DNA from: Phallusia mammillata | Taxonomy: Eukaryota | NCBI GenBank assembly: GCA_965637545.1 | Contig: OZ281497.1 | Location: forward strand, 14,818,001-14,882,000 | Direction: 5' to 3' | DNA: 64,000 bases | Shown here: positions 11,925-43,985 of the stretch, one piece after another | Numbering within the stretch: the stretch's first letter is position 1 | How the letters are laid out: the number at the start of each line of letters is the position of its first letter | Position numbers and translations under genes: made by a program | The notes under the pieces: model-generated | Told to the model about the DNA's origin: nothing | What the model saw: only the letters and a program-made list of their open reading frames with translations | Database searches by the model: none

Positions 11925-13873
11925 ATGGATGATGAAGCTGAAACGTACAGATTATGGAGAATAAGGAAAACAGTGATGCAAGTAATTACTTGTTTATTTG
12001 TTTTTTTACAATATGTGTGTTTTGAAAGCTCAATATTTCAATTTGTATCTTTTTATGATTGACAGAGTTGTCATGCTTCTGCTATAAGTATAATATCACT
12101 AATCTATTAGTTGCTGTATTGTTTTTGCATTTCAAGAATAAGTTGTTTTAAGAAACTGACTTCATTAAAAGAAATTTCCCAACATACCGTATACATATAT
12201 GCCATGTTTGGTTGAGCAGTAAGACTAAGCACCAGTCCGATTTTGTTTCAACAGCAAACAGTGACTAATGAAGTTATCATTCTATATCTATCCTATGTAG
12301 TACTGACTAAGCTTGCTGTGTTTCTAATATAGACAACTCATTTTTATTGGGCAGTGAATGCTTTTGTTTCAAGTGGCCTGTGTTTAGATTGGGTTTGGTT
12401 TATTGCCAAGTCCACTGCTCTGTTTATCAATTTGTACTTTTTGGTGTTGTTAATTTGGATAATGAGCTTAAACAATTTCGGGACTTATTTGATTCTTGCA
12501 TTTAACTAACTCCTTGTTTGTGCAAATTAAATTTTCACATCTAAATTTTAGCTTTGCCATGACCGTGGATATTTGGTCACACAACATGAACTTGACCAAT
12601 CCCTTGAGGAATTCAAAGATGAATTTGGTGATAAACCCAGTGAGAGAAAACCTGGACGACAAGATCTTACAATCCTTGTTGCTCACAATGATGATCCGAC
12701 AGATCAGATGTTTGTGTTTTTTCCGGGTGGGTGCTAAATAACTCTAGATCAGTGGTTTTTAACTTTGTAGTATGCAGATGAGCTTTCTATTATACTTTCA
12801 AGTCAAATCCAAAATTGCAACTTAACTTACCCAACTGATAAACCTTGGGCAAAACTCGTGTTTTGGACATTCTTTCGGAGATGCTAATATTGCTGGTTTT
12901 AGGAATATTTTGTCATAGTAAAGAAGAATATGCCTTTTTTGTCTACTCATCCAAATAGGGTTTGGTGGTATGCGGCCATAGAAAAAGTCGTAAGGTTGTA
13001 CGCAATCACTATAAGGTTAAGAACCACTGCTTTGGACACTTGACAGAACTCCAATTTTACTTTCACAACTGTAGAAACCGCATTTTACCAATTAAGAAAG
13101 AAAGTCTTTTTTTATGGTTGCTTTGGTATAGTAGTTGGTTTGTCATGTGTAAAATCCTTATCTTTTTATCAGAGGAACCAAAGGTTGGAGTAAAGACAAT
13201 CAAGACATACTGTCAAAGAATGCAAGAAGAGAACATTCAGCGAGCAATTATCGTCGTGCAACAAGGCATGACACCCTCTGCTAAACAATCATTATTTGAT
13301 ATGGCACCAAAATATATTCTTGAACAGTTTTTGGAACAAGAGTTGCTGATTAACATTACTGAACATGAGGTATATTATTTCTCAAAGTTTCAACAATTGC
13401 GATACAAGTCCATTTAATCTTTTTAATTGTTTGATGTTGTAATTTAGGTTTTTTTTTTCTTGTTCCTTTTTTACTTGTCTGTCATTTGTAACTTTGTGTT
13501 AATTTGCTGCTTCTTTGGGTGGTAGCTTAATCTTTTGTATAAAACTTCCGTAAAAATCTGAATTGTATATGAAACTTTTGTAAAAGTCCTAATGAATATC
13601 TCCGATAGATTTTTTGTGGTTATTAACATATTCTAAGGACATGTTTTTAAAGATATTTGTGTCTTACAGCTTGTACCAGAACATGTTGTACTAACACCCT
13701 CTGAAAAGCAGGAGCTGTTGACAAGATACAAACTCAAAGACTATCAGCTACCAAGAATACAAGCTGGTGACCCTGTCGCGCGATATTTTGGACTTAAACG
13801 GGGCCAAGTTGTCAAAATTGTTAGACCCAGTGAAACAGCTGGACGTTATGTAACATACAGACTTGTTCAATGA
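11925..13873 (+). CDS. POLR2E: DNA-directed RNA polymerases I, II and III subunit RPABC1 (RPB5), 210 aa
   Basis: Exons 11925-11981, 12552-12726, 13173-13369, 13670-13873 total 633 nt. Protein runs [26 protein letters not shown]...[42 protein letters not shown], nearly identical to metazoan RPB5. Confidence 0.99.
12750..13029. mobile_element. hAT-type MITE (280 bp) in POLR2E intron 2
   Basis: Terminal inverted repeats (TIRs) CAGTGGTTTTTAAC / GTTAAGAACCACTG (13/14 match); flanks CTCTAGAT and CTTTGGAC form a decayed 8-bp TSD (5/8). Confidence 0.75.
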
Positions 13874-23739: not shown

Positions 23740-37319
<13,580 letters not shown>

Positions 37320-40032
37320 ATTCTCGTCGATTTTCATCCTCATGACAACTTTACAACCCAATTCCCGTTGCTATGGCAACGTCCACCACACAGTCAGTGT
37401 TGCATTTCAGGGCGAGAGTCCTTGCCTGGTGGCCAGCGCTTTACCTATTTATTTTCCACCATATAGTTAACGCAGTTGTTCAGAGTTTTTTTCAAAGAAC
37501 GCAGGTGCCCCTGAATGACTGACGCAATTTCCCTTGTAGACATTTGAGGTTATCGAAAGGTCGTCTGGCCATTGCATCATATGTATAGTTCAATTTCGGC
37601 GTGTGTGCCCCTCGGCCGTTGCACGCTGCTTCGTCATAAAATACTATTTTTATACTAAACCCGCCGGTACCGTTTGCCAAAGTAGTGCACCGATCGTTTT
37701 GTGTTCCCCGTATCATCGCAATGCTGGCAGAAAAGTTCGTGTTACACTGTACAGTAGCAAAACTCGCCTATATACTGTGAGTCGTGGCGCGTGGTTCCTC
37801 CCTCGGTTGTTGTAAGCCAATAAACTCTTCCCGTAACTTTCAAGGAAGCTAGACCAGCAAAATTCCCCCGCGCTCGTCAATGGACTGCGATCTGACATTT
37901 ATTGTTGTGTTTGCGACGAATCAAGTGGCTACTTACAAAGTTCGGTGCTTTGAAAGTTCACTGTTGCCCACCTCATGTGTATGTGTACGTTGTATCTGTG
38001 TTGAACGCGCCTGTTTGTGTGATGGCTCGCCCTGTTCCCCTATATTGCTTCCTGCTTCTGGTCGCCAAACGGCTTGAAAACCTCTTCATATTTTCATCTA
38101 CCGCCAGCGCAGTCCCACCCTGTGTAATGCGATGTAAACCACAGAACAGCCACATTATTATGTTTCAAACAAAGACCGCGTTTGTGTCAGCATATAGCTT
38201 GGTGCTATTGGTAGCGTCGTGTCATATGAGGACAGTCATCTCTTCAAGCCGCTAAAATACCCCGATGTAACCTTCCAACGCATGCACTAAAGATTTTGCG
38301 CCTGTCTGCTTCGATGATTTATGGTAACAGATCGTTGGTTTGTCGCCAGCGGTGTTTCTTTTCTCGCAAATCTTCTCCGCGTTACGTGTCCTGTCGTTTG
38401 TCGGGCCACCATCTATATTTTGTATGTGTCGAGCGCATTTTCTCGTGTAAAATTCTCCACATGAACTTACATTTACCGTGTGATTTTTGCCCAACCAGAC
38501 TCAACGGTTACAAGAAAGCAAAAACTTGAGCCTGGAAAGCAAAAAATAGACATGCCACATTTTGGGAGGGAATAGGTTTTAAGTTTGCGGTTAGTGATGT
38601 GGTAAAGGTCAGGCCATCTACGTCACAGCTACCCGTTGCTTGGTGTTCGGGCTGATAATCGTGGTGTTGTAAAGGTCAGCTGTAAAGCGTTGAACACTCA
38701 AGTCGTCATGCAATTAAATCGACCAGCCAGTGGCGCTGGCAACGTCATTTCCGATTTCAAAGACTTACATGTCCCGTGTTTTAATGATATGCGTGATTAA
38801 AACATATATACAACACGCTTTTATGCCATGATGTCCTTATTGGTTTGTAGGCCTCCATGTTTGTTAAAGTATGGCCTCTAAACGTTAAATGTACAAACAT
38901 TATTTGTGCCAAATTTTTGGCTAGATAGCGTTTATTTTAAAATTTAAATTTTGCTTTGCTGCAAAGTTGAAATAGCATGCCGAACGACGTCAACGCCCGT
39001 TAGCTGCCTAACAACTGTTTCAGATGTAGGTCAAGCATATTTTGCGCAAGAAATTTTCATGAATTTATGAGTTTAACACCAGGTAAAGTTCGCATTGTCC
39101 CCACGATGTGTCAGAACAGCGTCAAACCACGTCGAAGCGATCCACTGACTTGCCGCTGGGCATGCAGTGTATCGTTAGCCGACTTTATCGCCTGCATCGG
39201 AATGTCTAAGCTTTGTGGTTGCTGGGTCATATACTATGTGTGTGGAGGAATCTAGGTCATATACTGACTGACTGACGGAATTGTAAAAACCCTCGGTTTG
39301 TATCCGGTTTTATTGTGTCCGAACGAACAGTTGGTCAAAAAAATCGAATGCAAAGAAATACTACACTTACAGTAACATACATCAAAAAATTTTGCTTGGC
39401 CTTGTGCTGCGTGTGCAACGGTAGTTGATAAATGATTTGCAGATGACGCATGCCAGTCGTGACACATCGACACGACGTTTTGCTCACACTCTGTTCGGTC
39501 AAATGCCAATTTAGTGTCGCTATGTCCGGAAAGCATTACTCTTCGGACGCTTAGTAATCCAGGCGGGTTTGGTGTGGCCGCACACACAATACATTAAGTC
39601 GCAATCGTGTCTTTAAAAATGCGATTAATTGCAATTTGTGTGACGTCATTCGGCAGGGCGAGGCCGTGCCTGCGTGGTGTGAGCTTTCATACCAAATTCG
39701 GCTTTAGTCAATATTAGGCGGTTTGCCGAATGTTGGCGACAACAATATAGGGAGAATGAGAAGGCGCAAGTGGGAAAATTGCAATAGCTTCGTTGCATTT
39801 ATCGTGCTTTCGCAAATAGTTCAAAAAACAACGCTCGGTCGCCATGTTCGGTTATAATTTTAAGTTAAACGCATGATGTACATTAACGTTTGTTTAAACT
39901 AGACATAAAAAAGAAAACTAAACCCAGCAATAAAACAACATATCAAAACTGACTTCGATTTGTACTTGTAGGCGAACGATAAAAATGTAATTTGACTTCA
40001 GTCCATTCCTTGTTTAAGACGACCAACAAATT

Positions 40033-40314
40033 TTATCCGTCTTGCTGCTGTTGGTTGGCCTCAGCCACAGCATCGTTCACGATTTCACTTGACATTCTGT
40101 TTGCGCTTTCCTGTTGCTGCTGATCAATTTCGTCATTGTTGCCAGCAGCCTCTTGCTCGACAGGAGCCTGTTCCACTTCCGCAGCAGTGCCGTTCGCCTC
40201 CTGTTGGGTTTCCTTTGCTTGCTCTTGAGGTTGTTCTTCCGCTGGTGCTGGGGAGGCTGCTGCCTCTTCATTAGCTGCCTCTTTTGCTGATCCTTTGCCA
40301 CAAATTGATCCCAT
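40033..40314 (-). CDS. Small acidic myristoylated/palmitoylated protein with an AKAP-type helix (smAKAP/AKAP18-alpha-like), 93 aa
   Basis: Intronless ORF with an in-frame upstream TAA and AAAATGG start context. MGSICGK N-terminus; A/E/Q-rich body with no aromatic residues; C-terminal ANRMSSEIVNDAVAEA. Confidence 0.85.
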   Translation of the reverse strand: MGSICGKGSAKEAANEEAAASPAPAEEQPQEQAKETQQEANGTAAEVEQAPVEQEAAGNNDEIDQQQQESANRMSSEIVNDAVAEANQQQQDG

Positions 40315-43300
40315 TTTGGTGTAGCGGAGTTTTTGGGGTTAGATTGAACTGGTTTCTGTTGTTTGCCGTTATTTTCTTAAACCAGGACAGCTTGACTTTA
40401 CCCAGTTACAATTAAACACAAACAGCTTCAACTTGGAAACAATTGCTTTTAGGGTTCTGCAATATAAAAAATCGTAAAAATAAACACAAAATCACCAAAA
40501 TCTACAATTAAAAGTCTTGTTGTCACAAACTACGCCCTCGGATTTGCCACTTCTGCGTGCTCGTTCAAGCCTAACCAATTCAACTGAGAGAAAAGCTAAA
40601 GCCTCTACTACAACCAAGTGCCACACAGGAAAACTCAGCTAATTCGCAATGCACTGTCTGCCAACAACTTTCGACTCATTCCGCTGGGTAGTTAAGGAAA
40701 CGAATGCTTCACGATTGCTTCGACTGTGCTGCGGAACAAATCGTTACGCGTTTTACGCAGACCGAACGTAATGAATAAAAGATGTTGTGACTTGCAACCG
40801 CAATTTGGCCCCAGCTGTTAGGTTTGGTACAACAAACACACCAAGCCGCCTCTAGTTCTCAAACTGTGTTAATTTCCCACATTACACAATCTGTTTCGAT
40901 GCGCTGCTCATGAAATATTCAGGGAGGCGTCCCTGATCAGCAAAATCTCAATACCTGCTACTGGTTGCGCGACGTTCAGAAGTAACTCCCCGGAGACTAC
41001 CGATATCGCGATTTGTTTCCATCTTTTTCGGTCGTCGGGCAATTTGGCGGCCCCGGCAGACATTTGTAACTCACAACAATTCCCTATTGATTTTGCTACG
41101 CCTGGCTGCGAGAAGAAAGTCTGTCGCAGTCTTTCTAACTGACTGATTTGCCGCCGCCGCACGAAAAACAAGGTGCCAAGTCAACTAAACTGGCTTTGAA
41201 GCCATCTCCCTTCGTTTAGAGCCGCCGATGACCACTTGTGAATACCGCCCGGCAGGAGGACACTTGCTTTATTGTTTTGAGAAGGAGAAACTACGCAGTC
41301 ATCCATCACCACAAAAGTTTCAAAGTCTAACGATAACTAGTTAAGTCTTCAAGTCGTTATAATTCAAGAGCGACAGAGAAGGCTTGTTGTACGTCTTTTA
41401 ACAATTGCCCTGTTGATTTCATTTGTAAACCTCAACTTGCTCTTAACTTAACAATCCACATATCCAATAAAGATCTTTCAATTTGCGTACATAATACTGT
41501 TTAAAGAATTACCAATCTGTTCGTTTCCTTGTATGGTTTTCGCAAGCAATAAACGAATGCCATTGGAATTGCGTCGCTTGCTCGAGGCTGTTTAGTATTA
41601 TTCGTGGCCACCGCGAGAACGCTATAACACCGATAAGAAAATGCAAACATGAAACGAAAGAGGTGACTTTCCCAAGCTTTGCAGCTAGATTCTCTTTACT
41701 TATGACAAACCAAGTCCCTGGTGTAATATTGCCGGCAGTTTGGACCTCAGAGGCTTGCCAAAGTTTATAGCTACATCCGCTCTCTTCGGCAAATTTGGTC
41801 ATTTCTGAGTCAAACATGAGCTCACTCATAATCCACACCGTTGTCAAACAGTGTATAGCATTTTAATGGATTTTGATATGTACTGCATAATACACCGAAT
41901 TTACGAAGGTTTTTCAAATTCCAAAACGTTAAACAGGTACAAATATATTGTAAAGCTATGAATCCATGTGCATCTATGCTGTGATGTTTTTGATTCGTCT
42001 TTGTTTTTTTATTCGTTTAACACATTTTGCTAGAAATCGCAGTATAACTAAACAAACCAATTTGGCGATGCTACATGTAATATGAAGAAAAAGTCCCAAT
42101 CAGACAATTCGCCGCAAAAGAAAGTATGTAATGTGCAATTAGAGCATTCAAGGGAAGGAATAATTACATGTGTTTGAGGTTTGGCGCATCATTATCGGCA
42201 AATGTAAGTGACATATATATATTAAGCACCCGCATTTAAGTTTGAAAGATTAATGTTAATCTTTGTGTTTGAAACAGTTCCAACAAAATATAAAGAACAA
42301 CTCTAACTAACTGAACACATGTTTGTGTCACACTGGCATTTGTTTGCAGGAACCAATGATGCCATTAACCTTACGTAAATAATCTATTTTAAGGAATATG
42401 TGTACATACCTTTAGATTCTGCATGGCCTGCATGGTTTTTTACACTGGGTTTTCGAATTCTACATGAAACGTTTGAACATAACTTTATTTTCACGACACT
42501 TGCGTATTACTTTGCAACTAACTTCATCTTTAAGACCTACCTACAGTACCTTTTCAAAATGTTTTACAATCTGTCGACTTATCCAATCGTATCGTCCCTT
42601 GTTGTCTAGTGATCTTTTTATTGCCACATTCTGTTACTCCATAGATCGTTTTTGTTTTTTTCTTGATTTTCACAAATATAAATATGTGTGGCTGCTGCAC
42701 TTGTGACTCTCGCTTCCACATTTATTTTACCTGTAGGTAATTTCTCAGCTGTCCGATGTTTGCAGCTGTTTCCTGTTTATGTGTCGCGTTATACCTATGT
42801 GATATTCTTACGAACGTATAACATCATGCTAGACAATAAACTGTCTTGACAAAGAGACTAATATCAATAATAGAAGCAAACGCATTTGTGCAATAAACCA
42901 GCAATCACCAACCCTTATTCCAATTTCCAACATTCACTGGCATTCATTTGCGCTCGTCAAAACCTGCACTTCCCTTTCGGCGTGACATGGGACTACAGCT
43001 CCCACCAAAGCAAAGGATGCGCTTTGTTATTTGCTGGAAGCAAGCGTATAATTAGGCAAACCTTTTGTGCAGTAATAGCCAGTCTAATATCTGCGACATT
43101 CGCTGCTACATGTTGCTGCTGGACGCACAACCTACACCTAGAAGCCCTGCAGCGTCTGCAGTGGTTGTGATCGCTTTGGGCGCGGCTTGTCACATCTAAA
43201 ATCTGCTTTATAAATGTCATTTGCAATATTTCAGTCTCGGTTGGTTTGTCACAGCAGGAAGTAATATGGAAATGATGTCTGATGGTGTTGAAGCAGTTCA

Positions 43301-43985
43301 GACAAAAATGACATTTTACGAAGTTTTGTCCAATGTCCATTTGCAAGTGTTGTAAGACTCAATTCCTAACTTGACTCGAGTCGTTTTATTTAAAAGACTA
43401 TACGTGCTTTAAGACGACATAACCTGACTCGAAGTCTTAAACTGTTCACCATGAAGTTGTCATCTGTCATGGATTCGAAAAAAAACTCCGTTGAACTAAA
43501 TACATTTGCTTCAGTGCCTTGTCAATAACGTTTTTTATCCAAACTTGCTTTAATAAAGCACCGAGAATTTATCCCAAAGTTCTTTTTTCCACTTTAATTT
43601 TGCCATGTCACATTACTCGGTTAAAAACCTCTGTTGTCTTGAAAAGTTTAACACCTGAAATCAAACCTCACAACATCTTTTAAGGCTTGAGTTGTTCGAC
43701 TGATAAGACTGGTTGTTCAACATTGCCAGTAGTATCAGGGAATCTTGCCCCATTTGGTTATGTGATCTCAACCGTCTGACTTAAATTCAAACGTGTCAAC
43801 AACTGATCCATGTTGTATTTACAAACAACTGTGGGCAATTGTATCAAAACATGTTTTTGCTCAATTTCCCACCAAAATTCATCTGTAGCTGCAATCTCGA
43901 AACACGTCACAAAAGTATGGTGAAATATTACTACGAAACAATTATAGAAATTATTTAAAATGTGTCTAAAATTCAATGTTCATAA

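Follow-up and report, generated by a model that had tools for sequence, protein, structure and literature searches.

An unannotated trans-spliced gene of the ascidian Phallusia mammillata encodes a candidate lipid-anchored micro-AKAP

A-kinase anchoring proteins (AKAPs), which bind the regulatory (R) subunits of protein kinase A (PKA), form a functional class and not a homologous family. The face of their binding helices that contacts the dimerisation/docking (D/D) domain of the R subunits comprises helix positions 2, 5, 6, 9, 10, 13, 14, and 17 (PMC12083921). Two small lipid-anchored members are of particular interest here. The first, smAKAP (also AKAP19; C2orf88; Pfam PF15127), is very small (about 95 amino acids), with an N-terminal myristoylation and palmitoylation signal and one R-binding helix in its C-terminal third. 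The second is AKAP18-alpha (also AKAP7-alpha; PF10470), likewise a short lipid-anchored AKAP. According to published surveys, both smAKAP and the AKAP7 binding domain arose at the base of the vertebrates, and the domain of AKAP7 that binds type I and type II R subunits (RI and RII) has been reported to be absent from Ciona. The subject of this analysis is a 93-amino-acid open reading frame (ORF) in 64,000 nucleotides (nt) of the ascidian Phallusia mammillata (GenBank assembly GCA_965637545.1, contig OZ281497.1, positions 14,818,001 to 14,882,000; “the window,” numbered from its first letter), for which an original prediction from the sequence alone had proposed the architecture of these two proteins. 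It belongs to a transcribed, protein-coding gene, and its product is a candidate membrane anchor for PKA.

The ORF lies on the minus strand, from an ATG at 40314–40312 to a TAA at 40035–40033. The coding sequence (40033..40314) is a single exon, and the encoded protein starts with MGSICGK and has ANRMSSEIVNDAVAEA at residues 71–86 (40104–40057), exactly as had been claimed. The window is AT-rich (35–45% G+C) and contains no N; dozens of ORFs of at least 95 amino acids occur across it, so the length of this one proves nothing by itself. Transcript evidence was sought in four public sequencing runs aligned to 38500–43500. A contig from one of them (X8) corresponds to 39296–40458, followed by 17 extra letters found nowhere in the window. 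The reverse complement of these letters, GGGATTCTATTTGAATA, together with the genomic AG at 40458/40457, makes up ATTCTATTTGAATAAG, the spliced leader (SL) that predominates in Ciona intestinalis (PMC1488885, Table 1). A leader of this sequence marks the genome as that of a Ciona-type ascidian. Since a leader junction forms on RNA only, the contig shows a mature transcript, whatever the label of the run. The trans-splice acceptor on the minus strand (40457..40500) has a long polypyrimidine tract and then the AG at 40458–40457 where the leader joins, and a similar pyrimidine-rich tract ending in AG is found upstream of the ATG in the one homologous locus (L001, described below). A contig from a second run (X6) corresponds to 39317–40376, with a word depth of 406 and thin coverage on either side, including upstream of the acceptor.

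The mature mRNA consists of the leader joined to 40456..~39296. The ATG of the ORF is its first AUG, and no other ORF within it is as long. Expression, which the original prediction had presupposed, is borne out by a mature, trans-spliced mRNA. The 5′ untranslated region (UTR; 40315..40456, minus strand) comprises 142 nt after the leader, without an upstream AUG, and the start codon is in a favourable context (CACCAAAATGG). The 3′ UTR (39296..40032, minus strand) is about 737 nt long; an AATAAA at 39314–39309 sits about 13 nt before the end of the X8 contig, and the two contigs end at 39296 and 39317. A separate observation comes from an oligo-dT seawater metatranscriptome (X13), in which a 161-nt contig at 40274–40433 covers 5′ UTR and start codon with two differences. 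This suggests that planktonic stages or shed cells contain enough of the transcript for it to be picked up in environmental RNA.

The region upstream of the acceptor (40459..41340, minus strand) is probably outron and promoter. One contig from the run X1 (39521–41340) covers mature exon, acceptor, and some 880 nt further upstream; it is consistent with an unprocessed precursor that retains the outron, and transcription may start near its upstream end at 41340. Non-coding blocks at 40863–40922, with more up to about 41110 (minus strand), are conserved with positions ~800–1000 of L001, while the surrounding DNA has diverged, and they probably have a regulatory role in promoter or outron. An upstream ORF at 40908–41171 was considered as a first cistron and rejected, as it has no protein-level conservation. 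Because of this, and because the lengths of the indels in the shared blocks are not divisible by three, the region is read as outron and promoter and not as a cistron. An Rfam scan over 38500–42500 gave no match.

A word-based protein search identified a single relative, a 91-amino-acid protein (P0001; E 1e-25) encoded on the 1.9-kb Logan contig L001. The two coding sequences differ at 12, 8, and 52 sites in codon positions 1, 2, and 3, so that 52 of 72 differences (72%) are in third positions. Over the whole coding sequence the proportion of synonymous sites that differ (pS) is 0.87, which is saturated, and the proportion of nonsynonymous sites (pN) is 0.12. The constraint is unevenly distributed, with substitutions and indels in the protein alignment in the stretches between conserved blocks. 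Residues 1–12 have no nonsynonymous change, although seven of about eight synonymous sites differ. In residues 38–50, an invariant block (QEANGTAAEVEQA; 40165..40203, minus strand) within the linker, eight synonymous and no nonsynonymous differences were counted in the DNA alignment. Residues 63–93 have a pN of 0.05, and the helix core differs at R73K alone. The helix on which the original prediction depended is therefore kept, as is the N-terminus, in the sole orthologue found. The constrained elements are the N-terminal MGSICGKGSAKE signal, the central block, and the C-terminal helix.

These figures bear directly on whether the ORF could have arisen by chance within a non-coding or otherwise functional transcript, without giving a functional protein. 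The ORF is short and of low complexity and, as the original prediction had anticipated of a gene missed by annotation, it is not in any of the protein collections searched; an exact-sequence look-up of the protein returned no record. Against this, nearly three-quarters of the differences from the homologue are in third positions, pN/pS is far below 1 with synonymous sites saturated, the start codon of the ORF is the first AUG of a processed mRNA that is abundant, and neighbouring ORFs show no protein-level conservation. A chance ORF is thus extremely improbable: this is a real, unannotated, SL-trans-spliced ascidian gene.

The protein is strongly acidic, with 20 D/E to 4 K/R, and begins with a predicted dual-acylation signal, MGSICGKGSAKE (residues 1–12; 40279..40314, minus strand), in which Gly2 would be myristoylated and Cys5 palmitoylated. 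The signal is invariant in the homologue and fits G-{EDRKHPFYW}-x(2)-[STAGCN]-{P}, the N-myristoylation pattern of PROSITE. At the level of sequence motifs it has what smAKAP has, a Gly2 for myristoylation and a nearby cysteine for palmitoylation; in smAKAP the palmitoylated residue is Cys3, as against the candidate Cys5 here. A match also comes from a different quarter. The dual-acylation signal of Leishmania HASPB, MGSSCTKDSAKE, is myristoylated at Gly2 and palmitoylated at Cys5 (PMC5540225), and it is identical to the ascidian one at 9 of 12 positions, with Gly2 and Cys5 in both. The rest of the two proteins is dissimilar and the organisms are unrelated; with the likeness confined to the acylation signal, the match is a functional analogy only. 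Behind the signal, AlphaFold2, run on the two-sequence alignment with the homologue, gives a disordered acidic chain, in which even the invariant block at residues 38–50 has a predicted local distance difference test score (pLDDT) below 50. This block may be a second interaction motif. The linker is far more acidic than that of smAKAP and has many Q and A residues.

The lone structured element in the same AlphaFold2 model is one long alpha-helix at residues 60–92 (40039..40137, minus strand). Mean pLDDT is 79–87 in 10-residue blocks over residues 61–90, while most of the remainder is below 55. Within it, the core SANRMSSEIVNDAVAEA (residues 70–86; 40057..40107, minus strand) is amphipathic and, counting S70 as position 1, all eight published face positions are small or hydrophobic: A71, M74, S75, I78, V79, A82, V83, and A86. 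In length (AKAP helices have 14–18 residues), amphipathicity, and face positions it has the features by which R-binding helices are recognised as a functional class. A spacing pattern of this kind is a weak indicator when taken alone. The original prediction had relied on the spacing of small and hydrophobic residues, and a generic AKAP pattern does match at residues 75–86, but 9% of shuffles of the protein match it as well, and it was dropped as stand-alone evidence.

What did stand is the resemblance when the helices are held in register. Seven R-binding helices from the literature (the A-kinase binding segment (AKB) of smAKAP, Ht31, AKAP-is, SuperAKAP-is, AKB-RII, RIAD, and AKB-RI) were set in register, and every 17-mer was scored against them with BLOSUM62. 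The 17-mer from residue 70 scores 18.1, 8 units above any other in the protein and inside the range given by the known helices when each is left out in turn (15.3–29.3). Of 35,541 background 17-mers obtained by translating the remainder of the window in six frames, none reaches this score, and only 1 of 5000 whole-protein shuffles and 1 of 5000 shuffles of residues 60–92 do so. Among synthetic helices, the score is reached by none of 20,000 of heptad type, none of 20,000 with 3.6-residue amphipathic periodicity, and 1.5% of those in which the eight AKAP positions were constrained to be hydrophobic. On these figures the helix is, as judged from its sequence, specifically of AKAP type and more than merely amphipathic. 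The AlphaFold2 model, the match to HASPB, and this score together bear out the three-part architecture originally proposed (acylation signal, disordered acidic linker, C-terminal amphipathic helix), and that both the gene and this architecture are real is close to certain.

The smAKAP helix sequence given in the original prediction agrees with the published one, and the count of 6 of 16 identical residues holds: A, R, S, I, D, and A, including an Arg-x-Ser. The pattern common to both is A-x-R-[LM]-S-x-[DE]-I-[LV]-x-D-A-[LV], with the candidate helix lying nearer the C-terminus of its protein. Ser66 of smAKAP, within the Arg-x-Ser, is a PKA site whose phosphorylation releases RI (PMC13025221); the candidate has R-x-S (Ser75) at this position, and the homologue K-x-S. 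The comparison with AKAP18 fared less well. A figure of 6 of 16 identities had been claimed on a longer stretch of the AKAP18 helix, of which only LVRLSKRLVENAV was verified; over this part 5 of 13 residues are identical, and R-[LM]-S, [IL]-V, and A-V are shared at matching helix positions. AKAP7-alpha is also one splice form of a multi-exon gene, in contrast to the stand-alone gene with a single coding exon found here. Two engineered peptides can be compared in register as well: I9, V10, A13, and A17 of AKAP-is and A2, N3, I9, and A13 of RIAD are common to the candidate. Both are optimised synthetic sequences, and their hydrophobic residues are bulkier than those of the candidate, in which positions 2 and 17 are Ala and position 6 is Ser.

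From these elements a working scheme can be proposed. After removal of the initiator Met, Gly2 would be myristoylated and Cys5 palmitoylated, and the acylated N-terminus would be fixed in the cytoplasmic leaflet of a membrane, with the disordered acidic linker as a flexible tether. The small and beta-branched face of the helix (A71 to A86, as listed above) would enter the groove of the D/D four-helix bundle of the PKA R-subunit dimer, and PKA would thereby be held at the membrane, as by smAKAP and AKAP18-alpha. With S-A at the start of the helix instead of F/Y-A, binding to RII or to both isotypes would be expected, and not RI selectivity. Ser75, which corresponds in position to Ser66 of smAKAP and is likewise part of an R-x-S, could allow feedback release on phosphorylation by PKA. 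That the protein anchors PKA is well motivated, if just short of probable; that it anchors some protein with a D/D domain, be it PKA or another, is on balance probable.

The difference between these two grades lies in the possible partners. AKAP-type helices also bind other proteins with D/D domains, and the evidence from the helix serves such partners as well as it serves PKA. The helix might thus dock another four-helix-bundle protein of the RIIa/DPY-30 type, such as ROPN1, SPA17, a CABYR-like protein, or a radial-spoke protein of cilia and sperm flagella, and tether it to the membrane. No data favour such partners over R subunits, and a partner of this kind is considered improbable.

Several results weigh against PKA anchoring, or against kinship with the known small AKAPs. 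The family SmAKAP (PF15127) is the top Pfam match for both the window protein (E 0.15) and its homologue (E 0.077), but at 13.5 bits it has half of the gathering cut-off of 27. When the protein was searched in pieces, neither the 34-residue helix piece nor the N-terminal piece matched. Since the match needs the acidic linker besides the helix, composition may contribute to its score. An exhaustive profile search of 1.84 billion protein representatives returned the same homologue alone, with no vertebrate relative; searches of PDB sequences with the full protein, the helix piece, and a profile gave nothing at E up to 10, and ESM Atlas feature searches with the whole protein and the helix part gave no usable match. 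The F/Y-A motif at helix positions 1–2 is absent, with S70-A71 in its place. The two faces of the helix are equally invariant in the window protein and the homologue, and conservation therefore gives no hint as to which of them would bind. The hydrophobic face is rich in alanine, with M74, I78, V79, and V83 its only large residues, and affinity may be low as a result. The register-fixed score, for its part, is to be read with the size and nature of its reference and null sets in mind: the reference helices are few, partly engineered, and interrelated or partly redundant, and the null sets are synthetic and not natural proteomes. In addition, the candidate was picked by eye in a genome-wide scan, which introduces a post-hoc selection effect.

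Taken at their strongest, these points would make the protein a membrane-anchored, acidic, disordered microprotein like BASP1 or HASPB, the helix of which binds a partner unconnected with cAMP or self-associates, with the likeness to AKAPs a coincidence. There is no detectable homology to any AKAP family and the Pfam match is sub-threshold; many small acylated proteins are not AKAPs, HASPB, which the N-terminus resembles, among them; and the invariant block at residues 38–50 points to further interactions. The sequence of the helix is harder to accommodate in this way. Its residue order is specifically AKAP-like, in that ordinary amphipathic and heptad helices never reach its score and few even of those built on the AKAP register do, and the candidate scores against known R-binding helices as well as these score against each other. 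A coincidental likeness is on these grounds rather doubtful, and behind PKA anchoring in the present assessment.

A different question is whether the gene, if it does encode a PKA anchor, is a true smAKAP (C2orf88) orthologue that has diverged past detection by sequence. Tunicates are the sister group of vertebrates; the two proteins are of similar size, with a myristoylated and palmitoylated type of N-terminus and a helix in the last third; and the identities in the helix, the R-x-S, and the rank of SmAKAP among Pfam matches for both ascidian proteins are in its favour. The low bit score and the lack of a vertebrate match in the exhaustive search count against it, as do the published phylogeny, with smAKAP arising at the base of the vertebrates, and the start of the helix. 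The F/Y-A motif is a determinant of RI selectivity, and a YA-to-LL mutant of smAKAP loses RI binding (PMC12083921). The helix of smAKAP begins with the Y-A needed for this, the candidate with S-A; the missing aromatic residue had been noted correctly in the original prediction. Orthology is accordingly judged unlikely.

For AKAP7 the case is simpler, as its RI/RII-binding family (AKAP7_RIRII_bdg, PF10470) matched neither protein at E up to 10. Metagenome scans with peptide patterns and with a degenerate helix pattern also gave no match. With a sub-threshold Pfam score, no PF10470 match, no vertebrate relative, and no F/Y-A, filing the protein under either the smAKAP or the AKAP7 family was rejected, and the kinship to both implied by the original prediction is not supported. 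Homology to smAKAP is not established. Family membership being unsupported, the proposal that the protein works like smAKAP and AKAP7 rests on its architecture and its helix.

Little else could be named in the neighbourhood. A motif scan found a kinesin gene on the plus strand, convergent with the microprotein gene, with kinesin motor motifs at 28815 (P-loop), 30651 (SSRSH), 32355 (RVKDF), and 33121 (RVKEL). Among 20 long ORFs nearby, Pfam scans put a name to none, apart from a weak match to the RNA polymerase Rpb5 N-terminal domain at 12962–13417 (plus strand). This match is below threshold (20.3 bits for a cut-off of 27; E 8.8e-4) and spans a 24-residue stretch of its ORF, which may represent an Rpb5 exon.

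A candidate lipid-anchored micro-AKAP in a tunicate is new and not part of the current inventory, since in the available surveys neither smAKAP nor the binding domain of AKAP7 goes back further than the base of the vertebrates. If the protein does anchor PKA, either small lipid-anchored AKAPs were already present in the ancestor that tunicates share with vertebrates, or the same design was invented twice. The first of these has a more specific form, in which the gene descends from an ancestral lipid-anchored micro-AKAP of tunicates and vertebrates from which smAKAP, and possibly the terminal RI/RII-binding exon that turns up abruptly in lamprey AKAP7, also derive, with F/Y-A added later in vertebrates. 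Such a descent is decidedly unlikely on present evidence; if it were true, membrane anchoring of PKA by microproteins would predate the vertebrates, contrary to current AKAP phylogenies. Whatever its history, the gene shows concretely that a small ORF can be functional and yet be missing from the protein collections searched. It would also be a minimal, genetically tractable PKA anchor. Ciona likely has one RI gene and one RII gene, and electroporation of its embryos would make localisation and loss-of-function tests comparatively easy.
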